This document shows positions 3,193 to 59,970 of a stretch of DNA of 64,000 nt, piece by piece. The DNA comes from Podarcis liolepis (lineage: Eukaryota). The notes beneath the pieces are model-generated. The model did not search any database. It worked only from the letters and a program-made list of their open reading frames with translations, and was not told where the DNA came from. Made by a program: the position numbers and the translations under genes. The stretch is from the NCBI GenBank assembly GCA_965112155.1, contig OZ218109.1, one strand, 5' to 3'. The first letter of the stretch is position 1; the number at the start of each line of letters is the position of its first letter.

Positions 3193-3330
3193 CAGGCATA
3201 GGCAAACTCCAGACCTCCAGATGTTTTGGAACTACAACTCCCATCATCCATGGCTAACAGGACCAGTGGTCAGGGATGATGGGAACTGTAGTCTCAAAAC
3301 ATCTGCAGGGCCGGAGTTTGCCTATGTCTG
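3193..3330. mobile_element. Hairpin hAT MITE (CAGGCATAGGCAAACTC...GAGTTTGCCTATG(T/C)CTG, URR1-like)
   Basis: Long internal inverted repeat; TSD CTCTAAGC (3185-3192, 3331-3338). Confidence 0.88.
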
Positions 3331-6840: not shown

Positions 6841-7299
6841 TATTACAAAACACAAGTTACATATAGGTCCACAGTTATATATACAGACACAGTTACATTA
6901 ATACAAAGTTTCTAATATATAAACATGAATATCAATTCATTTTCCTTCTGACACACCCTCTCTCTCAGTCTCCAGATTCTCACCCAGGGTCCAAACAGAC
7001 TCTAGCTTACCCACAAAAATCTCACAATGTGATGAGCACTTGGAAAGAGTGGACATCACTCTAGTCTCTCACTTTTGACTTGCTTTTTATGGGCAGGCCC
7101 AAGGTGAATAGCCTTCCTTAGGCTGCCTTCATGTGTCCCATTCAGCTACACTCAGTTCTAGAAGCAGCGGATTTGTTGAGTTTCCCAGGTGGTTCAAAGA
7201 ACGCAAAAAGGGGGCCCCCTCCACTCGCAGCTCTTCCTTCACCCTCTGTCATCTTCTCCTCCATCTTCTTCCATACACCATGTAGTAACAGCAACCATA

Positions 7300-7655
7300 A
7301 AGGTAAAGGGTAAAGGGACCCCTGACCATTAGGTCCAGTCATGACCGACTCTGGGGTTGCGGCGCTCATCTCGCTTTATTGGCCGACGGAGCCAGCGTAC
7401 AGCTTCCGGATCATGTGGCCAGCATGACTAAGCCGCTTCTGGCGAACCAGAGCAGCACACGGAAACGCCATTTACCTTCCCGCTGGAGCGGTACCTATTT
7501 ATCTACTTGCACTTTGATGTGCTTTTGAACTGCTGGGTTGGCAGGAGCAGGGACCGAGCAATGGGAGCTCACCCCGTCGCGGCGATTCAAACCACCGACC
7601 TTCTGATCGGCAAGTCCTAGGCTCTGTGGTTTAACCCACAGCGCCACCCGTGTCC
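7300..7655 (-). mobile_element. Sauria (Squam1-type) SINE, full length
   Basis: Reverse complement of GGACACGGGTGGCGCTGTGGGTTAAACC...GGGTCCCTTTACC; 13-bp TSD AACAGCAACCATA. Confidence 0.92.
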
Positions 7656-7942
7656 AACAGCAACCATACACAGACATTTAAAATGTCATCTGCAAAGTGG
7701 CTGTAACATGCCAGCCAGTCGCACTAGAATTACTTTAGTATGAGGCTTCAAACAGGTGGCCATATGAAACTGCCTTGTTCTGAGTTCAGCGTATTGTCTG
7801 CTGCACTGGCGTGCCTCTCCAGGGTCTCGGACAAAGGATGCTTTCCTACCTGTCCTGCCAGTGCCAGGGATGAAACCTGGGACCTTTCGCATGCGAAGCA
7901 CGTGCTTTAGTACTGACACTTTCACTTTGCACTTCACTAGCA

Positions 7943-9382
7943 CAGTGTTTCCCAACCTTTTTTGGGCAAAGGCACACTTGTTTCATGAAAAAAATCTCGA
8001 GGCACACCACCATTACAGCCCCGTGACGTCAGCGCGCAGCGTCACGCCGGGAGGGACATGAATTGCTAGCAAATTACATAATCACCTCCTTGAGGGCTGG
8101 CTCATCTTCTCCGAAGGCAGAACCCCATTAATTAACAGCACAGACTCACACCATAGCCAAGACGAGGGGGGAAAACCTCAGTCATGCACAGTCATGCACA
8201 TGTGGGGGCTAAATGAGGACGAAGACCGGGCAGAGAGCAGGGTTCAAATCACCCCACCTGGCCAGGACAATCCCTGGGTGCTCCCTTGGGCCACTCGCCT
8301 GACCCACCTCGCAGGGCTGTTGTTGCGAGGATAACATGGGGAGAACCACGCGCGCCCCCGGGAGCTCCTTGGAGGAGAAAGCGGGCGATGAATGCAATGC
8401 ACGAAATATATGAGAGGCGACCAGGTTTTGCAGGTGAGGGGCCCCCGCCAGCCTCCGCTTCCAACACCCGGCACAACGACGCTGAAGTTTCCCCCCGTGC
8501 TCGGCTCGGGGAGCAGCGCTGCTCCCCCCCCCGGCTCCCCTTCGCCCTCCCGGCTCTCTCTGCCGCCCACTGGGGACCCCCCTCACCTGCCAAGTCCGGA
8601 GCGCCGGTGAAAGTTGCATGCATGCACGCAGGGCGCCGCGTTGCCATTGCATTGCACTGCACTCCATGCAACGCCTGCACGCATGCATTGCCTTGCACGC
8701 CCGCCAAGGGGTCTCCCCGCGGTCCGATGCGTCCCCTCCGGCGCGGATGCAGCATTGCAAAAATAAAACCCCCCCGACGCAGCCCTACCTGGGGGGCAGC
8801 CTTCGCCTCCGCCGCTCCGCCTCCGTGGGGATCCCCGGGCTCCATCCTGCCGCCCGATCTCCGCGGGGGCGCAGGCAGGCTGTGCGGGGTCTGCGCGGAA
8901 GAGCCCCTGCCCGTCCGGCCGCCGCCGCTGCGCTCATTCCATGGCCGGGAGAAGAGCGCTTCAAACAAAACGTCCGGCCCGCCAGGCCACGCTGGGAAAC
9001 GTAGTTCGTGCACCCCGCGCGGGCGCGGAGCCCAAGGGCGAGGGGACTACGGATCCCGGCAGCCTCCACGCCGGGGATGGAGGGGGAGAGGCCGGGTGCA
9101 GGGATGGAGGGACGGGTGGGCGAGCGAGTGAGTGAGTGGCAGCCGCCAAGCCTTGGCCGAGAGCCAGGAAGGGCCTCCCTGGAGGAGGAGGAGGAGGAGG
9201 GAGGCGCAGAGCGGGAGGGAGGGAGGGAACCCCAGGGGTCATCTAGTGACGGCGCCCCAATCGAAAATTTGACTTTTTTTAAAAAAAAAAAATCTTTCGA
9301 TTTTTTTAATTTTTCCCGCGGCACACCAGGCAACATCTCGCGGCACACTAGTGTGCCGCGGAACAGTGGTTGGGAAACACTG
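7943..9382. mobile_element. Non-autonomous hAT (Buster/Charlie-type) DNA transposon carrying about 1.18 kb of GC-rich cargo (Pack-TIR-like)
   Basis: Perfect 15-bp TIR CAGTGTTTCCCAACC...GGTTGGGAAACACTG; perfect 8-bp TSD CACTAGCA (7935-7942, 9383-9390); subterminal GGCACAC repeats; no transposase ORF. Confidence 0.93.
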
Positions 9383-9583
9383 CACTAGCATATGACAGGC
9401 ATAGTCTTTGTTTCTAACAAGCTTTGATGGTATTAAGGAATTGGCTTTCAAATTGCAATATTGGGAACTAAAAGCACAAAAAGCAGACCCCCAAATTACC
9501 ATAGAATAACCAGGCATCAAGTCACTAAAGAAAATGCACCAGATCCCAAAGTTGGTAAGGTTCCACGGAAATTCATATTGTAC

Positions 9584-9800
9584 CAGGCACGTCCGACAGG
9601 TAGATCGTGATCTACTGGTAGATCACTGGATGTCTGTGGTAGATCACTGGCTCCCCCCCCCCAAAAAAGAGCTCAAGAACTCTAACTCCCCTAAAAAAAG
9701 CTCAGCAACTTTGACCTGAGCCCCTAAAAAACGGGGGTAGATCACTGCCAGTTTTTAACTCTGCGTAGATTGCAGTCTCCTTGGGAGTTGGCCACCCCTG
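9584..9800. mobile_element. Degraded hAT-like MITE with GTAGATC subterminal repeats
   Basis: CAGG... and ...CCCCTG ends and repeated GTAGATC; no TSD found. Confidence 0.5.
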
Positions 9801-10096
9801 GCATATGAGAAACAATAAACCCATTAAAAGAGTTACATAGATTGATTTCAATGCCCTGCAGTGTGATTAGGTTTTGTTTGTTTTGCCTTGCGAAATGAAG
9901 AGGACCCTGAGACCAAAGGCAGCTTTCTTTTCCCCAGGCTTCTTATTACCCTCAGTATTTGGGATGCAGCTGTCAGTGAGGAAGACTTGTTCTTTTAACT
10001 GAGACGTTTGTTGCTTATCTCTTTCTTCTGCTTGTTCCATCTGTCCGGCCATCTGCCTCCCAATGACCCTGGACTGCTTTCCATTCTGTATTACAG

Positions 10097-10181
10097 GTCC
10101 ACACGTTCCGAGGTCCACATTGGTGTGAATACTGTGCCAACTTCATGTGGGGACTCATTGCTCAGGGAGTCAGATGCTCAG
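10097..10181 (+). CDS. CHN2: CHN2 (beta-chimaerin) coding exon, first part of the C1 zinc finger: [28 protein letters not shown](D)
   Basis: Acceptor ttacag|GTC, donor TCAG|gtaatc, 85 bp. The translation is the chimaerin C1 domain and its phase joins the next exon. Upstream exons were not found in the window. Confidence 0.96.
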
Positions 10182-12413
10182 GTAATCTTAAAAATCTTAT
10201 TGACCAGGCCCTTAACCCCTGAAAAACAAAACTGTAAATCTCTTTCAAGGGACGATGCAGAGTGACAATGCCCACCTAAATTAGACAAAGCATTCTACAG
10301 TTTAATCATCTTCTAGAGCAATACACACACACACACTTAATAATAATGATGATGATGATGATGATAGTAACTGGTTTAAAGTGGATGTCTCCATTTCACT
10401 CAATGAAGTCAACAACTGGTGTCTCTATTTTTTTCTTTAATGAAGTTCAAAACTGGGAAAGAGTGGAACTTTTGCTATGGGAAATCCTGGCTAAAATTTG
10501 AATTCTAAGCTTAAAATATATGAGTAACTATTGAGCCTTTTGGGGGATTATAATGGACCTGATAATCCAGCAACTAAACTGCTCAACTGGACTGGACTGG
10601 ACTCCATTTCTAACCTCACTGACCTATGGTTAATGGGTACTAGTCATATTGCTATTATTGGTTGTTGGCATTTAATATATGTTAGCTACCAATTGCCAAC
10701 AGTGTTGTTAACTGTCCAGAAGAATTTAACAGTGTACGTTCTGAGCCTTTAACAGAGATTTGATATAAAGAAATAGGTAATCATAGCTTTCATGTGATGA
10801 AGTAAAAAAATATTGCCTGCTGATTCATGGGTTAGGCACCTCTGGCCCTGCAGATATTGTGGGGACTGCGACTCCTGTCCCTCTTGACTAATGGACATAT
10901 TGTCGGGGGTTGATGAAGCTTGATAGACAGCCACAGCTGAATTAGCTGGTGTAGTTCTATGAATGTGCGACCCAGAAAATAGGCACAGTTGCAATTTAAC
11001 ATGCCAGAGGGTAAGGTGAGTTAGGTGGGGAAGATCTGTTATGCCCCAGAGCTCTTGGATTTGTGGTGGGGGCATCATACTGCCATTTTATATTATGGTG
11101 CCTAAAGCTGGGTTCTTTTCTCGGTCAACCATACACAATATAATTATATGACTTAAATGACCGTTCCTTGGTATTTTCTTGTCAGTTGTCATACTTAAGC
11201 AGGTATGGGCTCTTGCCAACAACACTGTAACTTGACTCCCAACTCCCAGCAGCCCCAGCCAGCATGTCCAATCATTTTAGCCCCTATAAAGAGCTATACA
11301 CAGGTCTCTGTGGCTGAGATGTCCATGCTAAACACAGGAGACCTGTGTGACTTCAGGGTCCCTTTAAGCTCGCAGACTCCCTTTGCACAAGTAACACAAG
11401 AGGTTGAGTCGACATATAACTAATTATTCTTATAAGAACTGTACGTTTAAACATAATATGTCTGGCTGGATTTGTGTTCATTCTCTTTAAGTATTTAACC
11501 TGTGAAAAAAAGTATGTTTATTTAGTCCAAAGCTTAACGTTCTGCTTCATTAGGTTACCAATATTTAACTCTAAGCAGACAAACAAGTTTTTAACTACAC
11601 AGGAAATGTTTAGCAAGAACTAAAAAAACAAAAAACCTAAAGGGAGTATCTTAAGTACAGCTGGCTGGGTTTGTTTAGATTTCACTGAACAATACTGTAT
11701 TATGCAGATAGTTTCTGTCTGAACGAGCCCAATAAACCAAACAGATTTAGTTAAAGGCACAGAGGTCCTTTACCTGTGGGTATCAAATATTACAAGGAAA
11801 GAAACTGTTCATGTTTAGCAGTGGAGTCAAGAATACTTTATGTTGATGGCTGAAAGGGACAGTGATGATTCTGAATCACACTGTGTACTTGTGAGAGTTA
11901 ATTTTTATAAGAAGTGCAGAAGTCTAAGCCTGCCCAGAATCCCTAATCTCGGTGTTTGAAGCCCTGCTTAATGAATGAGGCAAGCTCTGGTTAGTCATTT
12001 GTACAGGTAGTTGACTCTGCACATGCATAGAGCCACACTTTTATTATTACTTCACATGTTCCAATGAAAGAGCAATAAATCCAGTTTTCTAGGAAATGAG
12101 TACAAAGGTTATCTAATAAATGACAAGCATATATTTTAAACACATATTCATTTTTTTACCGTTCTCAAGCTTCCCCAAACTAGCGCTTAATGCCAGCCAG
12201 ATGTTGCAGACTACAGCACCTGTCAGTCCAGCATGGCCAATGGGTCAGGGATGATGGTCAGATGAGAGTACATCTGGAGGGCTTTGACATGGGGTTTACC
12301 CTTCCCTACCCAGATACAACAGAAGGCTTATTTTCTCTTGGCTGGAATAGCTGGTTTCCTTGAAGCCTAATTGCACACAGGGAGATGGAGTTGGCAGCCC
12401 CCCTCTCCTAGAA

Positions 12414-13091
12414 CAGTGTTTTTCAACCTTTTTTGGGCAAAGGCACACTTGTTTCATGAAAAAAATCACGAGGCACACCACCATTAGAAAATGTTAAAAA
12501 ATTTAACTCTGTGCCTATATTGACTATATATAAAGTAATTCTCTTGAATAGGAATCAAATAAACACAAATCAAATAAACACAAACACTTAACATCAGTGG
12601 TGAGATTCAAAAATTTTAGTAACCACTTCCGACATTCAACACTTAACATCAGTGGTGAGATTCAAAAATTTTAGTAACCACTTCCGACATTCAAGCATGG
12701 TTTAATATTTTTTTCTCTAATGGCAAACAAAAACGTTGCGGACCGTTCTCTGCTCAGCGGGGATCGATCCGCTGATCCCCGCTGAGCCAGCGGATGACAG
12801 CTCCGTCTCCGCACTGTGTGCGGAGAGGGAGATGTCAGAGCCCCGCTGCTCTCTATGGGGAATCGGATGAGAGCGGACCGCCTGTCCGCTCTCATCCGAT
12901 CCCATCTGATCTCATCCCCACCCAGGACGGATGGAAAATAGGGTGGACACAGTCCGGCACCCGCCTAGTGGGCGAAAATGTGACATTATTTTTTAAAAAA
13001 ATCTTTCGATTTTTTCAATTTTTCCAACGGCACACCAGGCAACATCTCGCGGCACACTAGTGTGCCGTGGAACAGTGGTTGAAAAACACTG
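12414..13091. mobile_element. Non-autonomous hAT element, same terminal family as 7943-9382 but with a different interior
   Basis: Perfect 15-bp TIR CAGTGTTTTTCAACC...GGTTGAAAAACACTG; perfect TSD TCCTAGAA (12406-12413, 13092-13099). Shares the first 73 bp and last ~125 bp with 7943-9382. Confidence 0.93.
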
Positions 13092-13190
13092 TCCTAGAAC
13101 ATCACTCCGCCTCTGTTGCAACTAGGCATCCGTTAGGGGCCATGGGGCAGAAACTACACTTAGGCTGCAATCTAGGAGTAAGTCCCACTG

Positions 13191-13568
13191 GTATATGCAG
13201 GTGGCGCTGTGGCCTAAACCACTGAGCCTCTTGGGCTTGCCGATCAGAAGGTTGGCTGTTCAGAAGGTTGGTGAGCTCCTGTTGTTCTGTCCCAGCTCCT
13301 GCCAACCTAGCATTTCAAAAGCACGCCAGTGCAAGTAGATAAATAGGTACCACTGTGGCAGGAAGGTAAATGGCGTTTCCATGCGCTCTGGCTTCCGTCA
13401 CAGTGTCCCGTTGCACCAGAAGCGGTTTAGTCATGCTGGCCACATGACCCAGAAAGCTGTCTGTGGGCAAACGCCGGCTCCCTCAGCCTGAAAGCGAGAT
13501 GAGCGCTGCAACCCCATAGTCGCCTTTGACTGGACTTAACCATCCAGGGGTCCTTTACCTTTTTTATC
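13191..13568 (+). mobile_element. Sauria SINE
   Basis: GCAGGTGGCGCTGTGG...GGGGTCCTTTACCTTT; TSD TAAGTCCCACTG. Confidence 0.9.
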
Positions 13569-14561: not shown

Positions 14562-14735
14562 ACTGTGGATTGAACGTACACAAACAGTGTTCAAAATACG
14601 TCCCCAATGACTGCCAACCAGACCTCAAGAGAATCAAACGAGTCTACTGCTGTGACCTCACCACACTAGTGAAGGCCCACAATTCACAGAGACCCATGGT
14701 AGTGGACATATGTATTCGAGAAATCGAAGCAAGAG
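14562..14735 (+). CDS. CHN2: CHN2 coding exon, end of C1 and start of RhoGAP: (D)[57 protein letters not shown](G)
   Basis: Acceptor tttctttacag|AC, donor AGAG|gtattt, 174 bp. Overlaps track ORF 14570-14758. Confidence 0.97.
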
Positions 14736-16838: not shown

Positions 16839-16916
16839 GTTTGAAGTCAGAAGGGATTTACAGAGTCTCGGGGTTCACTGAACACATTGAAGATGTCAAA
16901 ATGGCCTTTGATCGAG
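16839..16916 (+). CDS. CHN2: CHN2 coding exon with the RhoGAP arginine finger: (G)[25 protein letters not shown](D)
   Basis: Acceptor cctgcag|GT, donor CGAG|gtacag, 78 bp. Contains the EGIYRVSG catalytic motif. Confidence 0.97.
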
Positions 16917-17149
16917 GTACAGTACATTTTAGCTGTGGAAAGCCTGTCGGCAATGTTTTAGCTTTGGAAAGCTTCTACATACCCTGTGTTCATTGGCGTT
17001 GCACATGTTTTGATGGTGTAATAATGAGGAGGCTGTTTTCCACCCACAATACTTTCGGGGTATTTTATGATGTACTGGTTTCTATTGACATTTACCTCGT
17101 ATGTTAAAACATGTATTGGGGTGAGCAGGAAGATGCACAGCGTCTCAAA

Positions 17150-19717: not shown

Positions 19718-21277
19718 TTCTAGGGTGCACACATTCCTGCCTTTTAAGTGGCCTTCAGTCTTTCCCCATCTGTTTAGCTTATAACAGGAAGAGAGATACT
19801 TATCAACTTCCAAGTAAAACTCCTCCATGATATGACTTGCTATGATAACCTATGAATGTCACTTTTATTTTGTAAACTTGCAAATAGCCTGGAAAAGGGA
19901 TATGGCATTCTGTTTTACCATATCTGGCTGGATATAGAGGCAGCTGCAGTATTCCCCCCCCCCCCCCAGCATTTGCTTTCACTGTAGCACTTTAGATCTC
20001 ATTGTACTGCAATTAAATAGAGCTGTCCAAACAACGTTTTATAATACTAACGCTACCGTACCAAGTATATGAGGATAAATATGAGTCTGGCTGGTGCAGA
20101 ATAAACACTGTGATGGAAGTACTGGTGCTGTATTAGGGTAAATTCTAATAAGCGGGTTCACTCTGCTATATCAGATACATAAACTGTTTTAAAGACTTGC
20201 TCCCCAGTCACAAACACATTTATAATTACACTTGAAGATTCATTCAGTTACAATTTAGCTCCTTCCTAATAAGTGTGATTATTGCTGAGGTTTTAAACTT
20301 ACAATTTGGCCTTCACGAGTAACTCAGCTATACATCTGCTCTAAAGGAAGTTTTTGTGGATATATTTCATGTCGCTTCAAGTTTAATGCCACAGGTTTCT
20401 TCGCAAAACAATTATTTATTCTGCTAAATACAAATGTATTTAAAAACTTTATTGCAGGGCTTTTCATAAGCAAAACAAAGTACCGTGACGTAGAGGAAGG
20501 AATAGGTACAAGGACTTATTTTAAAGCAAGACCTGAGAAAGCAGGTGTATCACTTGTTTTCTAAAGGGACAGAAGAGTGGATTACTTCTGAACAAATTTA
20601 AACTTTGTGCCTGAAGACTGAACTACTTAGTTCAGTAGTTTTAGGAACTACTTAGTTCCTAAAACACTCTCTCTCCCTGCTCCCCCCCTCACCACACAAA
20701 TAAGATTTTATACTCATGGTTTTATAATAGTTCCTTATGTGCTGCACTGATAGTTTCACTGAAAGGTATCCTTAAATCTTTTAAATAAAATGAGATTGGT
20801 CTATTATAGTACACTGTTCAAGGGACTGTCTTTGAAATGCCTTCATAAAAACATTTCAGCTAGTACAAATTGATCCAGCAAATGTGTTTGCTGGAGCCAG
20901 TGTATGGGAACGTGTAACTTCTTGATTGTTTTAGCTTTACTGGCTGAATAAACTCAGGGGTATATAACTCAAGGCGTTCACTTTGAAGCCTTAAAAGAGT
21001 TTGGGACAAGCATTCATAAGGGAACATGTCTTCCCATATGGTCATATGTCCATCCACAGAGGTGACATCGGAAGACGCAAAGGCACATCCCAGCTCCATC
21101 CGAGGTATAGTTGGTAGGGATGTGTGAAAAGGTATCCTATATGGTGTCCAGGTTATGAAACTTCTTCATTTTCCAGTGATTCAAAACCCAATCATGAGCA
21201 ATGTTTGACAAGATAGCTCAAGAATGTATTTGGCGAAAGAAAAAGTAGGACCTTTAAACCATCTCATTCTTTTCTAG

Positions 21278-21415
21278 ATGGTGACAAGGCAGACGTCTCT
21301 GCCAACATATATCCAGACATAAATATTATTGCTGGAGCACTGAAGCTGTATTTCAGAGATCTGCCTATCCCGGTTATCACCTACGATACGTATTCCAAGT
21401 TTATAGATGCAGCAA
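21278..21415 (+). CDS. CHN2: CHN2 coding exon (RhoGAP): (D)[45 protein letters not shown](K)
   Basis: Acceptor cttttctag|AT, donor GCAA|gtaagt, 138 bp. Contains the LKLYFRDLP RhoGAP motif. Confidence 0.97.
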
Positions 21416-21587: not shown

Positions 21588-21693
21588 AGCTCTCCAATGC
21601 TGATGAAAGACTAGAAGCTGTCCACGAAGTGTTGATGTTACTTCCTGCAGCACACTACGAGACTCTTAGATACCTGATGATTCATCTCAAAAA
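21588..21693 (+). CDS. CHN2: CHN2 coding exon (RhoGAP): (K)[34 protein letters not shown](K)
   Basis: Acceptor cacgtag|AG, donor AAAA|gtaagc, 106 bp. In frame with both neighbouring exons. Confidence 0.96.
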
Positions 21694-22622
21694 GTAAGCG
21701 AATCTGCCTATAAAAGGAGGTTTGATCATCTTTCTTTCGTCATAAAGAAATATGCTTAAAAAAACATTTTAAACCATCACTGCAGAAGAAATTTCTGGCA
21801 ACACTGCCAGATGGGTGGGGTATAAATAAAAAAATTATTATGAGTAATTTTAGTAGTAAAAAAATCTTCAAATTTTAACCAGTTTTACCAATCAACAAGT
21901 CACAGCCATATAAGTAAACCAGAAGTGTTAGACATGTAGAAAGATACCCGAGAGTACAATCAGTCATCATAGAGATCACAGTTAATTCAAAACTTTGTTT
22001 CCGAGTGGGTTCACACACAAAAAAAGTTTAGTTTATTACTAAAAGTGTAGAAAGAAAATTGACCACCAGTTTGTCCATGGAGGCCGTTCACAAGGAACTC
22101 TCCTGCCCACGTGTAATTGTGCCCCCCATTCAGAAAATGTGAGTGTGCCGCACTGATCTCCTGTCTCCATTTACCATAAGTGCACGGGGTAACTTACCAA
22201 CCTGCCAACACTGACGCCACTGCAGCTTTCTTGGACAGAGCAGTTGCACAACAAATTGACACTGCGGTGGGAGCTGGAGCCAATATGGTATAGGCCTGTG
22301 GGTGAACCAACAGAGCCATTATGATACAGGCCCAACCTTATTCCTGCCTTGTCCTACAATAGTTCCATCTAGGTTGCCAAAAAGTCAGTGTTGGAAAGGT
22401 GGCTCCAGCTCCCCCCGCCCCCAGGCCACTATTGCAGTGCAGAAACAACCATTATTGTGAAGCAAACATCTACTATATATTTTGAAAAGTAGTTTCTCTG
22501 TGCCCTATGCATTTGGACACCTCTTAAGATATACGGAAAATTTGCATGACAGTTCCTAAGATCAAGGAGCAGGTCTCTGTTTCTGTTTGGATATAACCTT
22601 GAATCAAGATTGCTAACTAAGC

Positions 22623-22758
22623 CAGCCATAGGCAAACTCGGCCCTCCAGATGTTTTTGGCCTACAACTCCCATGATCCCTAGCTAACAGGACCAGTGGTC
22701 AAGGATGGTGGGAATTGTAGTCTCAAAACATCTGGAGGGCTGAGTTTGCCTATGCCTG
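22623..22758. mobile_element. Hairpin hAT MITE of the 3193-3330 family, in the last CHN2 intron
   Basis: TIRs; TSD AACTAAGC/AACTGAGC. Confidence 0.85.
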
Positions 22759-22877: not shown

Positions 22878-23049
22878 GATTACCATGAATGAAAAAGACA
22901 ATTTTATGAACGCTGAAAATTTGGGAATAGTGTTTGGACCTACTTTAATGAGACCCCCAGAAGACAGCACTCTTGCTACACTCAATGACATGCGGTACCA
23001 GAAACTCATTGTGCAAATATTGATAGAAAATGAAGATGTTTTGTTTTAA
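22878..23049 (+). CDS. CHN2: CHN2 last coding exon: (K)[56 protein letters not shown]
   Basis: Acceptor cctttag|G. Contains [14 protein letters not shown] and the chimaerin C-terminus ENEDVLF; stop TAA at 23047-23049. Confidence 0.97.
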
Positions 23050-29175: not shown

Positions 29176-32100
29176 TACTATTTACAGATTTATTACCTTT
29201 ATCTTCCAAGGATCTCAAGGTGGTGTACATGGTTCTCCCTCCTCATTTCATCCTCACAAAAACCCCTGTGAGGTGAGGCTAAGGGATGGTGACTGGCCCC
29301 AAGGTCACCCAGTGAGCTTCATGGCTGAGTGGGGATTTGAACTCTGGCCTCCCAAGTGATAGTCCAGCACTCTTAATTTATTCCTGCATTGCAGGGGGTT
29401 GGACTAGATGACCCCTTGGGTCCCTTCCAGCCCTTGCGGTTCTACGATTCAATCCCAAAGACACGTGCCGTGAACTAACAGTGCCGTCCTGTACATGTTT
29501 GCTCTGAGGAAAGCCCTGTTGATTTCAGTGGGACTTGTTGCTAGCTAAGTGTGTACAAGATTGCAGTCCAAGGCTGCAATCCTGGGTCATATACTTGGCG
29601 GCAAGCCCCACTGAAGACATCTGGGCTTTCTTCTGATTAACGGTGCATGGGGTCAGTTTTATAATCCCGCTGAATGAACTTAACGGGAACTACGTCTGAG
29701 GGTCCCGGTACACTACTGTAATCTCTGAAGAGCTCTGAAATGGAGGGTTGCTATTTACACATGCACACACCCCTTCCCCCCCTTTCTGCATAATAGGCAG
29801 AAATCCAACAGGCTTTGTTTTTCCTCCAGTAGCTCTGGATTAAGTAACTGGTAAAGGACAATCCTAAAGAAGCATGTGTATAGCAGGCGATGCAGTTTGG
29901 GGATTATAGCTCTGCTATAAAAAAAAATCCCCAGTTTCACCCCACCTTTCAAATTAGCAAAATGTTGACAGCTAAGGGTTATCTAGCCATAAAAAATAAC
30001 CCCAGTTATAAAGTGCATTTTTCTGCTGTGTCCTCAGTTGCACCTGCTGAGTTGTTTCCTTGCACAGTACAGGTGCAACTTGGGCCCTCCAGCTATGACT
30101 TGCAACAAGCTTAATTAACAAACGCAACAAAGAGCTGCTACCTCAGTATCCAAGTCCTGCTGGAAAGGGGGCCGCCACTATTAGATAAATGTTGCAATTA
30201 ACCGTTCCAAAAAATAAAATAAAAAAAAGCTTAGTTTATCACTTTTACCTGCTGTTCGAAGGAACCTGCCTAATTCTGGTCTTTGCAGCAATTCAGTGAG
30301 TTGCATTCTGCTCGATGGATTCTACGTGTACAAAATATTACACGCTGTGGGTGAATTCCTGGCCCTAGTGCAACCAGTATGAATGTTCCATCATTCAACA
30401 GAGCAAGAATGTTTTTTTGCTTCACAAGCAAGCAGGAAACTTCTCAGAAATGAAAGCATGTTGAAGATTTAGGAGAGAGTTTCTAAAGTGCCTGGCCCTA
30501 CCTGTCATGATCATCAGTTTATGATGACAAACCATAGCACTGTTTGTGTGATAAGGCTGCGCAAAATCTGAAAGCTCCCTTGTAGGAAGGAGCAAGGTTT
30601 GCCTTTCATTTCCTTATCAAGCTGAAGGAACACCACCAGTGAACTTTTACAGAAACATTCATAGCTGGCTTGTGCAGCTGCATGGAGAAGAACCACTTAT
30701 GTAGTGACTCAGCCGATGTGTGCACAAAACAGAAAACCAGTGAGTTAAGTTTGCAGAACGGAAGGGGCATGCATGTGACTGTCTCCTCCTAGCAGTTCAA
30801 CTCCCAGGGTGAAGTTGTTCTAGGAAATTAATCCTCAAACTCCATGTCACAGAGCCATGATAGCTAAATTGAACCTCCATGTTCAGAGACAGTGTACTAT
30901 TATTTATTAACATCTCACCCTTTGTCATAAGATACCCCCAGGATGGGTATATATATATGTCTGACTTCCAGGTCCTGGGAGAGAGAGAAAAGGAGTAGCC
31001 ATTACTATTGTGATTTTTTTGAATATTTCCTTAAGGTATCTGCCTGTCAATTATTGGAACTAGATGGACAACTGCATTTAAGTCTGATCAGACAGTAGGC
31101 CACAATTAGGGAGCAAATGAGATCTACAGTACATGTATCTGGTGTCTGTATGCCTTCAAGGAATGCATTAAAAGAAGTTCCGAAAGTGCAGAAAAATGAG
31201 CTATATTTGTGCCATGCATTCAAAGGGAATGGAGAAGAGAAGAAACAATCCCAACAAAACACTGATAATTGGGTATATCTGATTATGCAGATATGCTGAA
31301 ACTAAATTATAGAATATATTTTTAATTCTGTCTCTTCTACTTTGAATCAAAATTTGCTCTGCACGCGAAGGCTAGGTATCAACTGGCTCACAATCCATCC
31401 TTATCCATGTTTACTTGGAAGTTGGGGTACTGAGTTCAGTGAAACTTATGCTGAACTGCAGTTTTCTGCTCACTCAGTTTGGGTGGTTTTGGCCTAAGAC
31501 CAAATCATTTTGTTCCCATTGTTTGCTGTGAACAACATACCAATGCAAAATTCACAAACCTGAAAAGTTAACATTTCAATCCCACTTAGCAAATTTTTGT
31601 AAGCTGATGGTGCTAAACTTTGCTGCAAATGTTCAACTATAGCTGGACTTGTCAGGAGGTACTGCTGGATCAGAAACCCAGTGTACTGGAAATACCACAA
31701 GTCTCTGTTTAAATCTTCAAACCAAAGAAGCTTTTGATGAATTGTGCTAAGCAACTGAATTCTTGGTTGCTTAGCCAGTCTTGGAAAGGTTTAACTACTG
31801 CTAATGACTTCATTAGTACAAAAGAAGGTTATGCAGTGTGGAAAGGTTTTAACTCTCCAAAGCATTCTAGATGAATTAAAGTTTGCATAGTTTCCTCACC
31901 AATGTGCTTAGGAATGGACACAGTTCCTATCCTATGAAATCTATCAACAGTAGCAGGTTGAGAACAGCTGAGTCCCGCTCAATCTTCTGTCTGTATCAAG
32001 GAGTAAGTCCCATTAAATTCAGTGGAACTTACTTGTGAGAAGACATGTGTAGGCTGCTGAAGCAAAGATGATAAGACACTGACAAATTGTCTTAATGCAA

Positions 32101-43463: not shown

Positions 43464-44144
43464 TGTCATCAACCTACAGGACATCAGGGAGGAGGAAGTG
43501 GATCTTGATGAGGGATGTAACCAGGTCTGGGACACACCAGGGCATGCCAGAGATGGTGAAGGAGAAGTTGGTGTAGGAAGCACCCATGGGATGACAGAGG
43601 ATGGTGAGGGGATGGGTGTCAGTGCACAGGAACCAGAGCAGCAGGGCCCATCACCAGAGGTAGAGGGGGCCCTGTCTCCACCGCAGGCTCTCTAGGACAC
43701 GGTTTCCCAAACTTGGGATCTCCAGCTGTTTTTGGACTACAACTCCCATCATCCCTAGCTAGCAAGACCAGTGGTCAGGTGGGACTTGCTAGCTCTGGGA
43801 GGAAGTGTGTGATTCCTCTGCTGGAGTTGGCTTGGAACAGGTGAGGGTCATCTGGCTCATCAAGCCCAGATGCTGCAATCAGCATGCAAAGTATAAAAGG
43901 GCAGCAGAGATGAGGTGCTGTGTCTGCTCAACTTCCCATGTTGGTGGGACCATGGCTTGGATGGTCAAGGGAGCGCTTCAGGGCTGACCTCCAGGTGTCC
44001 TGACCCCCTGAATTGGCTGCAGAGGAGGGATCCTGACCTGATTGGACTCTGGACCCGTTGGCCTGCTGGACTGCATGCTAGCATCTACTATGGGATTGTG
44101 CACTCCAGTGGCACTTGCCACCAGGTACCCCATGGTTCAGGGCA
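43464..44144 (+). mobile_element. Probable solo LTR (TG...CA) with an internal truncated hAT MITE (~43698-43780)
   Basis: TGTCA...GGCA ends; TATA-like GTATAAAAGG at ~43891; 5-bp TSD ATAAT recovered once the adjacent Tigger MITE is removed. Confidence 0.55.
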
Positions 44145-46328
44145 ATAATATGCTAACATAATGTTTATATGTCAATGAATGTTATGTATAAAGTTGCAGC
44201 TGTAATTTATATGCTTTCTGAAGCTATGCACTTCTTATTTATTGAAGAAATTTATTATATTTCATCTCCAATAAGGAGGCGTGTAATTGGATACCAGTTT
44301 ATAAATTGGGGAACCCCCCCCCCCAAATGTATATGGCACTGGGGCTCACAACAAAGTTAATGTTACATATTAGATAGCTGATACATGGCCACAGAGGACT
44401 TGGGTACTTTTCAGAGCAAATACTTGCAAGAGAGAGAGATGGAGAGGCTAAAATATAGAGACATCATACTGGCCATGAATGATTATGAGAAGCAGGGTGG
44501 TGCGATGTTGCTTTTTGACCACATTGTTCTCAGTTGAAATTTGTGGCAAAGCAGTATCTTGGGAAGGCATGGGAATGATTCTAGAACTGCATACTCATAT
44601 CCTCGGTTAGATTCAACTTTAATTACCGTATTTTATATTTGATAAAGGAAGCCCGAAACAAGCAGGAAAAAATGGACCAGGGTCATGCTATGCAGCTATT
44701 AAGAATGGGCAATGTCCATGCAATCATAAACACAAGCAATTATAAAGCAGTAAAATAAGTTCCACACCCCTGAGGTCAAATGAACTGATAATTTCTTGGG
44801 GTCACACCCTTCACGATGAATCACACCCTGCAAGGTCCTTCCCAATGGAGATTTGAAAGGTTGTTAGCTTTTAGGGATTTTCTTGTATTTTTTCAGATAA
44901 CACCTTTGTGTTTGTGTGCATGCTGGTTCTAGTAAGTCTCCAAAGAACAGATTTCCCTATACGGTTACACTTTCGATGATATTTTATGGCACAGCCTTCA
45001 CTTGGAGAATTTGATAATCAGCTTTCTAAGATTCTAATTCAGGGATTGCCAACAAGGTGCCCTCCACAAGTTTTGGGCTACAACTCGCATCATCCCTGAC
45101 AGCACCGGATTTCAGGCAGCGTGGCCGGTTCTGCCGCACATGGCGCTGAGCTGAGCAAGCGCAAAATGTAGAAGACCCATAATTGAGAAGATCTATTTGG
45201 GGGTGCCAAATTTTGGGCTCGCACAGGGCGCCATATTTTGAATACCGAAGTCTGCCCCTTTGCCTGACCACTGGGCCTGCTGTCTAGGGATAATGGGAGT
45301 TGTAGTCCAACAACATCTAGGAACCCAAGGTTGAGAAAGGTTGCTCTAGCTTGCTCACCACACTTGGTTCTTGCTCTGCGCATGCTTAAACACTTGTTGT
45401 GACCATGCTATGAGTGATAGCACTAGATCACTGGTTTTCAGCTGGAGAGCTGGGACCCAGAACTGGTTCACAGTCGGCTCTAAGGTGGGTTTCAACAGCA
45501 GCACTATTGTCATACAAACAGATGTGTGTTTGAGTTAAAGGTAGGTCCCAGTTATGAGACAGCTGAAGACTACTTCTCTATTTGAATATGCAGGAAATCT
45601 TAATGTAAAGCCCAAATGGCACTGGTCTACAACTTTGCCTGGGTTTCTTTTTGCATTCCTGCTATTCCGGGCAATCAGTGTAGCGGAAGGTTTTAAATAT
45701 GTAAAAATAATCCAAGTTTTGTTTTTCATCAAAGAGATAGCTTGCCTCGATTGTGCTTGTTTAGGGCAGCATCAAGGGACATATTCGCCCCATGCATGCA
45801 GAGGCCACATTCCAACTCAATGCACGAGGTAGCAGTGACATGCACGGCAAGCATGATTCTTCTGGCTGCTTGGCAAATTGAGATTGAAGCTTATTCGCAA
45901 GGTAATTTATGTTCCTAGGCAACATTTATGACAATTCTATAAAAGTTCCTCTGCAGGGATATCACGGCATTGCAAAAGTATTGCTATCATAAAGTAGGAT
46001 GTTATCTGTTTCTGAAATACAATTAAGCTATAATATTAACAAAGGTCAAGCCTGTGAGGGATTAGCAGCCCGAACTAGCAAATGCATATTAATGCTTGTT
46101 AGCATGAGAAGGGGCTACGACCACAGAGCTGAAATTGCTGACGCTCAGACCACAGAAATAGAATTGGTAGAGAGGGCTCTGTGTGATGTCACTTCCCCTC
46201 CTCTCCCAGAGAGGAAGGAGCATATAGTGCTTCCTGTTCCTCTCTCTCTTCCTTTGACCAGAGATGGATGCAGACATGCCTCCACTTGCTCCAGGCGCAT
46301 GCCTGAAGCTTGTTAGACAATGTAAGTA

Positions 46329-55278: not shown

Positions 55279-56158
55279 CAGTGGTTCCCAATTAAGTACT
55301 GCAGACCCCCTGTTTTGTTTCGTTTTGAAACCAATCCATGGACCCCCTACTTTTGAAAATGTTGCTATCTCTGTGCAGTGGTGCCTTGGTTCTCAAACTT
55401 AATCTGTTCCAAAACCAAAGCATTCCAAAACCAAGGCGCGCTTTCCCATAGAAAGTAATGCAAAATGGATTAATCCATTCCAGACTTTTAAAAACAACCC
55501 CTAAAACAGAAATTTAACATGAATTTTACTAACAAGACCATTGATCCATAAAATGAAAGCAATAAACAATGTGCTGCAGTCACACAATCGATCAATCAAT
55601 CAATAGCTGAACTGGGTTCCACACAGTCACAAAAACAGGAAAAGCTGCAACAACAAAAATGCAAAATAAATAGCAAAAACAGACAGAACTCAGCGTAACA
55701 CTCAAAACGGAAGTGTGGCACTCTAATTGGAAGTGTAACACTCAAAACGGAGAGCATTTGGCTTCCGCTGAAAAAGGTTTGCAAACCAGAACACTTCTGG
55801 GTTTGCAGTGTTTGGGTTCCAAGTTGTTTGAGTACCAAGGCGTTTGAGAACCAAGGTACCATTGTCGTAGTTTTTGTTATGTTAATGGTGCCACCATACC
55901 CTCTAACATGCCATAGCACAAAACAGAGCTGCATGTTTTCTGGGCTGCACTCCCATGTGAGAGTATGGCACCCAAAAATGTACATACCCAACCCATCAAC
56001 TGTCTGGAACACCCTGTTTTGGGGGACCGTGTTTTCAATGTGAGTAACCCTCCCCCAGAAAATGGGATGTCTGACAGATGACAGGTAAGTGCCACAGACC
56101 CCCTTAGTGGTTTATGTAGACCCCTTGGGGTCCACAGACCATCCACTGGGGACCACTA
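55279..56158. mobile_element. hAT non-autonomous element containing a nested Tigger/pogo-like MITE (55376-55864)
   Basis: Outer TIR CAGTGGTTCCCA...TGGGGACCACTA with TSD TGCTACAT/TGCTACAG; inner CAGTGGTGCCTTGGTTCTCAAAC...GTTTGAGAACCAAGGTACCATTG. Confidence 0.72.
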
Positions 56159-56828
56159 TGCTACAGCACACCTCAGCTGCTGACCCCACAATAGTACCAG
56201 CACAGAAGTTTCTGGAAATAAACTCAGTTTGGGGGCGGGGGAGGTGGCTGCCTTTTGGTTCAGAGCCTCTTCTATGTGAAAACATAGAGCAATAAAGGGG
56301 AGTTAATTAGAACAAGTTTGTCTGCCTCTCCACACTGCAGTGCCCCGGTTCGGACTGTGGCCAGGATACGTGGAACGAATTAGGCACATAGGGTCATTCA
56401 CACACTTGGCTTTTTTTTAAGGAGTTAGCAGACACAGATCTAGGAAGCTGCCTTATACCCAGTCAGACCACTGGTCCATCTACCTCAGTATAGGCTACAC
56501 TGACTGGCAGAAGCTCTCTGGAGTTTCAGGCAGGGGTATTACCCAGTCTTAGAGACTGATCTTGTTGGCATCTGTGGACAACACAGATGCTCCACCGCTG
56601 ACTTACACCCTTTCCCAGATCCTGATGTAGGGATGAGTAGGGGGCTTTGGTCTCCCATTGCAGACCTGCTCTAGACTCCTCTCCCCGCTCCCAACACCTC
56701 TTTGCTTGGGAAGCAAAACTTCCAATAGTGCAAATGTCAGATGTCAAGTGGGCTGCAGTCCTTTTCAGAGTCGTGCAAGGGGACCAGAGGACTCCAGCAG
56801 AAAATTCTCAACTCAGCCAGAAAGCCAT

Positions 56829-57137
56829 CGTGCCCGGAAGCTGAGGTCCAGCGCAGAGGGCCCTCGGGTGGCTCCCTCACTGTGTGAAGTGAGGTTACAG
56901 GGAACCAGGCAGAGGGCCTTCTCGGTGGTGGCACCCGCCCTGTGGAACCCGCCCTCCCATCAGATGTCAAGGAAAGAAACAACTATCTTCCTTTTACAAG
57001 ACATCTGAAGGCAGCCCTGTTTAGGGAAGTTTTTAATGTTTGATGTTTTATTGTATTTTTAATATTTTGTTGGAAGCCACTCAGAGGGGCTGGGGAAACC
57101 CAGCCAGATGGGCGGGGTATAAATAATAAATTATTAT
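56829..57137 (+). mobile_element. L2 LINE 3' fragment, same family as 50645-51850
   Basis: RLQGTRQRAFSVVAPALWN and a matching 3' UTR (GGAAGCC..CAGAG.GGCTGGGGAAACCCAGCCAGATGGGCGGGGTATAAAT). Confidence 0.88.
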
Positions 57138-57281
57138 TTGACCCAAGCCATTGAGGTGCTTTTGAAAATAAGCTTGGGTTTGTAGCATAGGAGGGCTTAG
57201 AGCTGTGAAATCAATGGAACTACATTCAGCATCTGTTTGGGACTAATGCAGTTGATCCTTGCAGTCTTTTCTCAGACTCTC

Positions 57282-57354
57282 TTTTTTTAAAAAATAAAAT
57301 AAAAATTAATTGGATTTTCAAATTATAATATTCAATTAAGATTTGTGGAAAATT

Positions 57355-57400
<46 letters not shown>

Positions 57401-57873
57401 CTCCCCCCCTCCTTGGCTTCCCCGTATTTCTGTATTGGTTTATTAAACAAATTCTATATCCTGCTGATTTTGCCTCTCATATAGTTGTGAAAGTTTAGTC
57501 AAAACCTGAGTCCAAATCTTTATACTGTCTTTTTATTTGGTTTATAAATGGTTCCCACTCTTTTTTGAAATCGATGTTGTCTCTCTCATATATCCTCTGT
57601 CAGCTTAGCCAGTTCCGCTTAGTCCATAAGCTTAGCTTACCATTCTTCCTTTGTTGGTGTTTTCTCTGTTTTCCATACTTGTATTAATAAAATTCTTGCC
57701 GCTGTTGTTGCATACATAAACAATCTCCAATTTCCCTCTCTTATATCATGATCTAAAATTCCAAGCAGGAAAGATTCTGGTTTTTTAACAAAAGTTTTTC
57801 CCCCCAACATTTTTTTCAATTTATTATATATCATTTCCCAATATTCTTTAACCTTCTTGCATTCCCACCATAC
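57282..57873 (-). mobile_element. 5'-truncated L1 LINE (ORF2 C-terminus and 3' UTR)
   Basis: WWECKKVKEYW...PESFLLG...YATTAARILL...WK...PTKEEW is a typical non-mammalian L1 ORF2 C-terminus; degenerate TSD CTTTTCTCAGACTCTC/CTTTTCCGAGACTTTC. Confidence 0.85.
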
Positions 57874-59970
57874 CTTTTCCGAGACTTTCAAGTACTACAT
57901 GTAAATAATCAGCGTGGTCATTTTGCTCCTCTGTTTTTATCATGATATGCCCAAGACACATAAGTACCACAGCTCACTTTTAGCGCTTCTCTTGCGCATG
58001 CAGATGATCTCCAAGTTCAATTCTTGAAATCTCCAGGTTAGGTTGGGAAACTCTATAGTTGGGAACCTTTGACAGCTCCTGCCAGTTTGGCTCCACAATT
58101 CTGGCTTGATTTAGTCTTAAGACCGTCTCCTATGTTCCTAGGTATCTAATCTGCTTGTTATCTTCATGTTATCCAAAGACTTGGAATTTTCTTTTAATGG
58201 ATGGCACATATAAAAGCAATGAGCCTATTTATTGCTCATATTGCTTATTGAAGAAAGTAGACAAAAAACTAAACAAAATTATTTCACAATAGTTTGTGAC
58301 AGATCGTGCAATGCAGAGGCAAATTGGCTTGCATCTGTAATACAAAACCAAGCATTTTCTCACTGTTGGTGTAGGATCTTGCTTTTGCTTTAGCACTGTA
58401 CCGTATATCTCTCAAGGGGCCTGCAGCTTCTTGCTGAGCCATCATATCAGTTGGCTCAGCAACCAGACAGTCACGGCGCCCACTTCCAAGGAAAGCGGTG
58501 TAAGCCATGCTTATCAACCTTTTCAGCGTGTACTATGATAAGATTATAATTCTGAAGATTCTGAAGGGGAGGACAATGAACTGCTCAACTATAACTAGCA
58601 CGACAGTGTGTTTGTGTGGAATTACGGGTGGCTAATATATTGGTAACTGGGTGTGGTGTCCAAATACCTTGCTAACCTTTGCTCGCAGTACTTAATGTTT
58701 GCAGTTTGTCAAGGACAAGACGGTTTGCCTGCTTTGTAAAAACCATGCATGCAAGTTTCCCATAGACATAGTGGGCCACTGTGAGAATCGGATGTTGGAT
58801 TGGGTGGGATTATAGTCTGAACCAGCAGGGCTTTTTATGTTCCCGGTCCTAATACTTAATTGTGGTCACACAATTTGGTTTATGAAGAAGCAACATTCAT
58901 CTAGTATTAAATCAGGGAACCTTACATAAGCTTGCTTGGAAGTAAATCTGGCCGAGAGTAATGGGACTTAGTTCTGTGTTCTCTAGGGATGCAGTATTAA
59001 AGAATACACAGGCTGAACCGTATCACGTTAACACAGAAATAAAGCTATTAAAATTATTCCTGTATCCCCCTCCATACTGCTGTTTTGCTGGATCTGTGGC
59101 ACTCATTAAAATATTTCACATCCTTACATCAGTCTCCCATATTTGTTCATCCAGTCTTCACAAAGGCCATTCTTTGATTTTATATAACAGCATTTAAGAC
59201 CTTTTCACATTGTTGACCTATATTTGTCTGCCAAGGTATTTCGGTCAGTGGAGCATCTAAAAAATGGGAAAAGGCTATTCATTGTTAGCACCATGTTTAG
59301 GGAAGTTCTTGCTCATTCCCCTCCCCCTTTACCATCTTACCCATGACTCCCATGTAGGTAAGTTCATTCACGTAACAAAATGTTAAAGCAGCCTAGAGCT
59401 ACAGCATGGGCCTGCATTAATCAGGCTATACAACGGGTTCATTGTTGATGTGTGTGTGGTTTTTTTAAGGAATATATTTTTCATGGTCTGTATTGTATTA
59501 CACCATTTGTTCTATGCAAGGACAAGAGTGAAGGAAGGCAAAAATGAGCTGACTCTAAGGCTGTAATACTAAGGTCATCAGACTCCTTGGGAAAGGGTCC
59601 CTTTTAAAGGGTTTTAACCTTTAATTCTAGGAGTTCTAGAACTTTGATGTCTTCTGCTGAGGGCCAGTCAAGAAATTTCGGTGCCTGAGGCAGAGCAGCA
59701 AATGGCACTCCTTGTCAAGCCACCTGGATTCTGCCCAAGGCTAGTCAAGTTCTTTTGGCAGAAAAGCCCACAAGTGCCTAAGCACAGACACAATGAATAA
59801 TGATGAATTAAACAGCTAGCACCTTGCTGCCCTTCCATGACCATCCAAATCGGCTGCCTGAGGTGGCTGCCTCACTCTGTTCAATGATTGGGCCAGCCCT
59901 GTGTCTGATCCCTTTGGGGTAGGCACCTGTATGATGAGATGGATGCCATTGGGAGAAGACGCAGCTATCT

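Follow-up and report, generated by a model that had tools for sequence, protein, structure and literature searches.

A 1440-bp segment of the Podarcis liolepis genome, hereafter element A (7943-9382 of the window, i.e. the 64-kb stretch of DNA analysed as a whole), is rather likely to be an intact non-autonomous Buster/Charlie-type hAT insertion, belonging to a probably multicopy lacertid family and carrying ~1.2 kb of promoter-like host DNA as a passenger. The transposon part of A is restricted to its outermost ~74 bp on the left and ~121-140 bp on the right, and the interior (8017-9261) is foreign to these ends. This cargo would have originated in the promoter of a host gene and been taken up by a capture mechanism of the kind discussed below.

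Element A is bracketed by perfect 15-bp terminal inverted repeats (TIRs) as well as a perfect 8-bp target-site duplication (TSD), which had been noticed in an earlier sequence-only reading of this DNA and were found again on direct reading and by a repeat search. Pairing between the TIRs stops at base 15, the 16th base being unpaired. The only exact matches to the TIR word in the 64 kb are the two ends of A, while nine matches (2.26 expected) are present in the window when up to three mismatches are allowed. A scan of the whole 64 kb for perfect TIRs of at least 11 bp associated with an 8-bp TSD (at most one mismatch) returned only two structures, A and a second element, B (12414-13091), and chance is no serious explanation for the TIR/TSD structure of A. 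The constituent parts of A, together with B, are as follows (a strand is given where there is one).

7935-7942: left TSD copy, CACTAGCA (direct reading)
7943-7957, plus strand: left TIR, 15 bp, CAGTGTTTCCCAACC (direct reading and repeat search)
7943-8016, plus strand: left hAT end of A, common to B, with GGCACAC subterminal repeats at 7971 and 8001
8017-8058: segment at the junction, its origin uncertain, containing a CRE palindrome TGACGTCA (8024-8031) within a 7-bp inverted repeat; not in B
8059-8232: moderately GC-rich unique cargo, with a 10-bp repeat present twice at 8179-8200
8233-8420, plus strand: old SINE-derived piece including its 3' tail (SINE-like at 8233-8381, up to ~8420; BLAST and alignment)
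8421-9242: CpG-island core, in which CpGs are densest (13-15 per 100 bp) at 8800-9100
8783-8845, minus strand: coding part of a proposed first exon, from an ATG at 8845 through 19 codons (MEPGDPHGGGAAEAKAAPQ) to 8789, with a donor-like GTAGGG at 8788-8783 (direct reading)
8947-8956, minus strand: pyrimidine run, TOP-like, a possible initiator, CTCTTCTCCC, ~50 bp downstream of the minus-strand motif of the next line
8986-9005, minus strand: ZNF143-type motif ACTACGTTTCCCAGCGTGGC, with the word ACTACGTTTCCCAG at 9005-8994
9046-9065, plus strand: second, weaker ZNF143-type motif ACTACGGATCCCGGCAGCCT, with the word ACTACGGATCCC at 9046-9057, divergent from the first
9262-9382, plus strand: right hAT end of A, common to B, with GGCACAC at 9320, 9342 and 9351 (minus)
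9368-9382, minus strand: right TIR, 15 bp, exact reverse complement of CAGTGTTTCCCAACC (direct reading and repeat search)
9383-9390: right TSD copy, CACTAGCA (direct reading)
12406-13099, plus strand: sibling element B including its TSDs (element 12414-13091, 678 bp), TIR CAGTGTTTTTCAACC, TSD TCCTAGAA (sequence comparison with A)

Both elements lie in an intron of CHN2, as had been stated for A, upstream of an exon at ~14.6 kb, and the target of the A insertion is an nnCTAGnn site. The 3' part of this gene could be mapped on the plus strand through its exons at ~14.6, 16.85 (GIYRVSG), 21.3 and 21.65 kb and a last exon at 22.9-23.05 kb, which match human beta2-chimaerin (1xa6) clearly better than they do chimaerin-1.

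Element A is a transposase-less, non-autonomous hAT. The two TSDs in the window (CACTAGCA and TCCTAGAA; n=2 sites) are 8 bp long with TA at positions 4-5, and both fit nnnTAnnn, the TSD consensus of the Buster type (PMC3517528). CAGTG, which is found at both termini of A at the tip of its 15-bp perfect TIR, corresponds to the YARNG motif, and an 8-bp TSD combined with a YARNG terminus has been listed as a hallmark of lizard hATs (PMC3014272). On the basis of the two TSDs and the TIR, the label 'Buster-type' previously given to A appears reasonable. No Pfam domain was detected in eight interior ORFs of A (E up to 0.1), ruling out a deletion derivative that retains transposase sequence. Within the 64-kb window, no autonomous partner was found either; a candidate suggested by weak TIR-like words at 55279-58055 was rejected, there being no long transposase-like ORF in that region (ORFs inspected by length).

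The limits of the transposon are revealed by comparison with B. At the left end, 7943-8015 is common to both elements (96% identity over 73 bp), and at the right end so is 9262-9382 (88% over 121 bp), with weak gapped similarity extending back to ~9243. Outside these ends no match whatsoever is found between the two, and the 480-bp interior of B is unrelated to that of A. Because B has the same ends and an unrelated interior, the segment from 8017 to ~9242-9261 is cargo lying outside the common transposon ends, and the earlier estimate of ~73-115 bp of transposon-like sequence on the left and ~140 bp on the right agrees well with this comparison. Short subterminal repeats near both ends are a feature of hAT elements. 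The word GGCACAC occurs five times in the ends of A and five times at matching positions in B, and 10 of its 16 occurrences in the window (7 expected) are within the ends of these two elements, which is the pattern expected of hAT subterminal repeats. Together with the TIR, these repeats would be putative transposase-binding sites. Sequence similarity on the left breaks off at the same position in A and B, which suggests that minimal cis-acting ends may have been kept while the interiors were exchanged.

What, then, is the cargo? The interior has a GC content of 0.66 and a CpG observed/expected ratio (o/e) of 0.75 over 8017-9261, against 0.41-0.43 and 0.20-0.49, respectively, in the intron flanks, which bears out its description as a GC/CpG-rich insert in an AT-rich intron. 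CpG islands are classically defined, according to Gardiner-Garden and Frommer, as stretches >200 bp with GC >50% and CpG o/e >0.6, a definition that fits the cargo core (8421-9242, 822 bp; GC 0.71, CpG o/e 0.76). The transposon ends of A (1.55) and element B (0.90) likewise have a high CpG o/e, and the youth of the element may contribute part of this richness. GC skew changes from -0.17 in 8421-8960 (p=0.001) to +0.28 in 8961-9242 (p=9e-5), the sign flipping at ~8950-9000, so that the G-rich strand points outward on both sides, and the two ZNF143-type motifs are positioned back to back at this switch. Since CpG-island promoters are marked by a GC skew that runs with the direction of transcription (PMC3787257), a flip located at the CpG peak favours a promoter reading, possibly a bidirectional one. 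The cargo thus looks like a bidirectional CpG-island promoter, with a skew compatible with divergent transcription. The sequence-only reading had proposed an order like that of a GC-rich promoter with a ZNF143-type motif on the minus strand; the motif is indeed there, and the proposed order gains a further basis from the skew flip between two divergent motifs. That the cargo may act as a promoter or supply an exon is nevertheless a prediction made from its letters. Some caution is needed regarding the motif; transposons of this genome carry it as well. The other five matches to ACTACNNNTCCC in the window are all found in one unrelated repeat context.

Scans for Rfam families and tRNAs returned nothing relevant in 7000-13500, and a snRNA-type gene, considered as a reason for the presence of a ZNF143-type motif, was ruled out on these grounds. 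With blank Pfam, Rfam and tRNA scans, a deleted transposase gene and a small-RNA gene can both be dismissed as identities of the interior. When A was compared by BLAST with the window, only the ends of B and one SINE copy were matched, and no similarity was found to a CpG-rich retroelement at 47-49 kb.

The evidence for a captured first exon is of a different kind. The letters are present as described, i.e. an ATG, 19 codons and a donor-like site on the minus strand, but reading them as an exon is not above chance and the peptide is unmatched. Donor-like CAG|GTRRG sites are found four times in the cargo (plus strand 8431; minus strand 8791, 8589 and 8260) and, because they occur this often and on both strands, an ATG followed by a donor does not rise above background. 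A search of the 19-residue peptide and of an alternative frame against proteins had been recommended, and neither matched any protein. The proposed exon, searched as residues 48-87 of a minus-strand ORF, shared words with 35 candidates (proteins of 140-444 aa), none of which aligned at E up to 10. The minus-strand ORF 8788-9348, which takes in the alternative MSAAAAAG frame along with the right junction, had no match among 1.84 billion representatives, and the plus-strand ORF 9008-9385, which runs through cargo, right end and TSD, had none in a protein search. Protein-level searches of the exon and junction ORFs hence identified no donor gene, and ORFs spanning the junctions revealed no other copy in which the same hAT ends flank this cargo. 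The three protein blanks are compatible with a donor whose first exon is non-coding or unannotated.

The history of the cargo can be partly read from the SINE-derived piece that it contains, which had been noticed at ~8220-8360 and is now placed at 8233-8381 (up to ~8420). Identity between this piece and a free copy at 29197-29346 amounts to 69-75%, whereas copies of the cargo (described below) are ~96-97% alike in DNA, as estimated from 90-93% piecewise protein identity. The SINE piece is therefore far older than the spread of the element, and most simply the cargo would already have been old genomic DNA when the transposon enclosed it. The complete cargo would then be a promoter next to a stretch with an old host SINE. 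At positions that read TG or CA in the free copy, the cargo SINE has kept CpG, as would fit prolonged residence close to an unmethylated island. Too few SINE copies are present in the window for a consensus or for dating the cargo piece.

Copies of the cargo outside the window came to light through the plus-strand ORF 8286-9128, which matched five protein clusters corresponding to 16 distinct ORF variants. All 16 are collinear with 8388-9132, the differences among them being single residues and, at homopolymer runs, frameshifts, while the window copy is ~3-4% different from them. They reside on public contigs of 905-1406 bp, none longer than A, five of which measure 1286-1296 bp. Contigs of ~1300 bp are what would be predicted from a 1245-bp cargo with ~30 bp of repeat overlap on each side, and the sizes fit assemblies that break in repeated ends, which is suggestive but no proof. 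The presence of TIR flanks on the other cargo copies may be deduced from these contig sizes and from a second locus. At this second locus, the translation of 8634-8855 has a counterpart with 88% identity in residues 55-126 of A0A670JQG5, a MIEF2 model from Podarcis muralis. A genuine conserved MIEF2 exon was considered and rejected, since the Cys/His-rich sequence of the segment results from translating TGCATTGCA-type repeats and the matches of ORF 8286-9128 included no other MIEF2 protein. It is better read as a probable intronic copy of the cargo annotated as an exon, although the P. muralis MIEF2 locus could alternatively be the donor rather than a second insertion. As CHN2 and MIEF2 are different genes, the cargo occurs at no fewer than two loci among lacertids, and the cargo family is probably multicopy. 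Furthermore, because the same cargo is found at another gene, in another lizard and on many short public contigs, cargo and ends appear to travel as one unit. The idea that host DNA was captured and moved as one unit is consequently supported in part: the unit appears to be mobile, but no donor was found in the protein searches. Membership of a probably multicopy family also means that the CHN2 copy arose by transposition and does not record the capture itself.

A plausible scenario would have three steps. An ancestral element would have lost its interior and acquired host DNA belonging to a gene's 5' region, either through repair of a gap or through a template switch, the two routes proposed for animal Pack-TIRs (PMC8277862). 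The resulting chimera would then have been mobilized in trans by an autonomous relative and amplified, and one of the copies would eventually have inserted at the nnCTAGnn target in the CHN2 intron.

It is possible, however, that A is an ordinary non-autonomous hAT whose interior is filler, or non-coding sequence of an unseen autonomous element or of another repeat, its promoter-like features being by-products of high GC and of the youth of the copies. Lizard hAT families with interiors unlike any autonomous element beyond the TIR are common and uptake of filler is documented (PMC3014272). The multicopy nature of the cargo is what would be seen for the interior of any transposable element family, neither a donor nor the exon was matched in protein searches, and high CpG o/e extends to the transposon ends and to B. 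Nevertheless, high GC alone does not predict that a skew flip should coincide with divergent ZNF143-type motifs and a CpG peak, and an ordinary interior sits awkwardly with an old host SINE piece inside much younger copies, with a Pfam search that found no transposase remnant, and with a sibling that has the same ends around an unrelated interior.

Two further explanations can be given far less weight. The intact TIRs, TSD and CpGs would agree with a single recent capture at this very locus, in which case the cargo would be unique apart from one donor gene. This is very improbable in view of the 16 near-identical ORF variants on other contigs and of the copy in the P. muralis MIEF2 model, the ~3-4% difference of the window copy marking it as one diverged member of a family. 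Scarcely credible is the notion that the GC-rich block belonged to the CHN2 intron from the outset, as a CpG island or alternative promoter that happens to lie between two independent hAT fragments. It has the position inside a gene in its favour and nothing more, while the two copies of the 8-bp TSD on either side of the 1440 bp agree, the terminal sequences form a left-right pair from a single family, correctly inverted, and the same block is present in a different gene of P. muralis.

How does A, read as a hAT with a promoter-like host passenger, compare with known systems? Animal Pack-hATs, including a multicopy one with a 5' UTR, and lizard hATs with orphan interiors or filler are already described. 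The definition of a Pack-TIR calls for a parental copy at least 90% identical and devoid of flanking TIR elements (Tan et al., 2021; PMC8277862). In A, TIR-transposon sequence is present on both sides of the internal sequence, and the interior is without transposable element protein domain or RNA family but does hold a SINE piece. The closest parallel in that study may be drawn with Pack-hAT-N8_XT from Xenopus tropicalis, which likewise has non-autonomous hAT ends and TSDs, encloses DNA from a gene 5' region and is present at several loci (PMC8277862). However, its parental copy has been identified (291 bp of the CAPSL 5' UTR), while none was found for A, whose cargo has four times the length and resembles an entire bidirectional CpG-island promoter. 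In the 100 animal genomes surveyed, captures were rare and almost always single-copy, only four multicopy Pack-TIRs were reported, and these tend to hold GC-rich DNA (PMC8277862); by word counts, the text of that study does not mention lizards, Anolis or reptiles.

Among known hATs, hAT-N3_AC and hAT-N4_AC of Anolis carolinensis, and likewise SPIN/hAT-HT3, share with A an 8-bp TSD with a central TA and a YARNG terminus (Novick et al., 2010; PMC3014272). The TIR of A, CAGTG.TTCCCAACC, also resembles those of SPIN and hAT-HT3 in the table of that study and differs by one base, i.e. at 1 of 15 positions, from that of hAT-N3_AC (CAGTGGTTCCCAACCT), the comparison being with the printed TIR alone. 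Like A, orphan hAT families of Anolis have interiors without similarity to autonomous elements, but they come from another lizard family and a CpG-island-like interior was not reported for them (PMC3014272). Another Anolis element, hobo_AC, parallels A as a lizard hAT that incorporates and spreads extraneous DNA, including other repeats (PMC3014272); it differs in that it belongs to the hobo/Ac clade, with TIR TAGGCTTG and TSD NTRNNYAN, and is very long, its filler consisting mostly of transposons and not of CpG islands.

Capture of host gene pieces by DNA transposons is well documented in plants. Pack-MULEs belong to the Mutator superfamily and have long TIRs and 9-bp TSDs, and A is not one of them. 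In rice and other plants they are, as A appears to be, transposase-less TIR elements that take up and amplify GC-rich 5' gene fragments (summarized in PMC8277862). A multicopy lizard hAT carrying a complete promoter-like CpG island would, if this is what A is, amount to a natural experiment in which islands have been dropped into many contexts, with new antisense promoters, first exons and unmethylated islands among the possible outcomes, as well as artefacts of annotation like the MIEF2 'exon'.

A bolder scenario is that one hAT chassis, composed of a 74-bp left end and a ~121-bp right end, has repeatedly taken up, from different host genes, CpG-island promoters along with first exons and amplified them in this lizard lineage. 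This is proposed tentatively, and we regard it as doubtful; it is prompted by the two different cargos on one chassis in the window and by one promoter-like cargo at two or more loci. If true, it would represent a vertebrate counterpart of the rice Pack-MULEs, in which each insertion would seed a CpG island, a divergent promoter and cryptic exons, the antisense side in CHN2 and the annotated exon in P. muralis MIEF2 being examples, and lacertids would become a vertebrate system in which to study how transposons shuffle promoters and exons. Should there be no donor, A would simply be one more orphan non-autonomous hAT family. As for orientation within CHN2, the stronger promoter-like side of the cargo faces antisense to the gene, and the strand that is annotated as exon in P. 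muralis MIEF2 corresponds here to the CHN2 sense strand.

The cargo of element A, i.e. the GC-rich interior of this transposase-less hAT insertion, recurs in a public gene model: residues ~55-113 of the Podarcis muralis MIEF2 entry UniRef100_A0A670JQG5 are the translated + strand of the cargo, which here replaces the usual disordered linker. This stretch is probably an intronic copy of the cargo that was annotated or spliced as an exon. Copies of the cargo differ mainly by length variation at homopolymer runs, with the public ORF variants (near-identical cargo-derived ORFs on short contigs) changing frame relative to the window copy at 8523-8533 and at other C/G runs of the cargo.

The ZNF143-type word ACTACNNNTCCC occurs seven times in the whole window (0.27 expected), five of these lying beyond the cargo:

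3231-3292, 22710-22721, 43736-43747 and 45295-45306: the five additional ACTACNNNTCCC words

All five share a single repeat context (...CCAGATGTTTTGGACTACAACTCCCATCATCC...), and two of them form an inverted pair with a spacing of 50 bp. This transcription-factor-like motif is borne by a transposon family of the Podarcis liolepis genome.

At its insertion site, element A adjoins or falls within another SINE-like repeat (7700-7934, GC 0.52), so that its immediate left flank is itself repetitive. Exactly at the junction between the left hAT end and the cargo, and possibly part of either, sits a CRE palindrome:

8024-8031: TGACGTCA, perfect, within a 7-bp inverted repeat (CGTGACG...CGTCACG)

The sibling hAT insertion with an unrelated interior, element B, lies in the same CHN2 intron:

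12414-13091: element B, with TSD at 12406-12413 and 13092-13099

Positions 9-10 of its TIRs read TT, versus CC in element A, and this change is repeated in the right TIR of B, so that each element retains perfect TIRs. The interior of B contains a perfect tandem duplication (two 55-bp units, 12583-12694) and a palindromic CpG-rich part (~12735-12970), in which Rfam matches are miRNA-like, weak and sub-threshold.

CHN2 contributes its five final coding exons to the window, all on the + strand:

~14570-14730, + strand: coding exon
~16850-16925, + strand: coding exon
~21270-21415, + strand: coding exon
~21600-21700, + strand: coding exon
~22880-23046, + strand: last coding exon

For beta2-chimaerin, they supply the final part of the C1 domain as well as the RhoGAP domain, with 94-100% identity to the human protein over the aligned parts.
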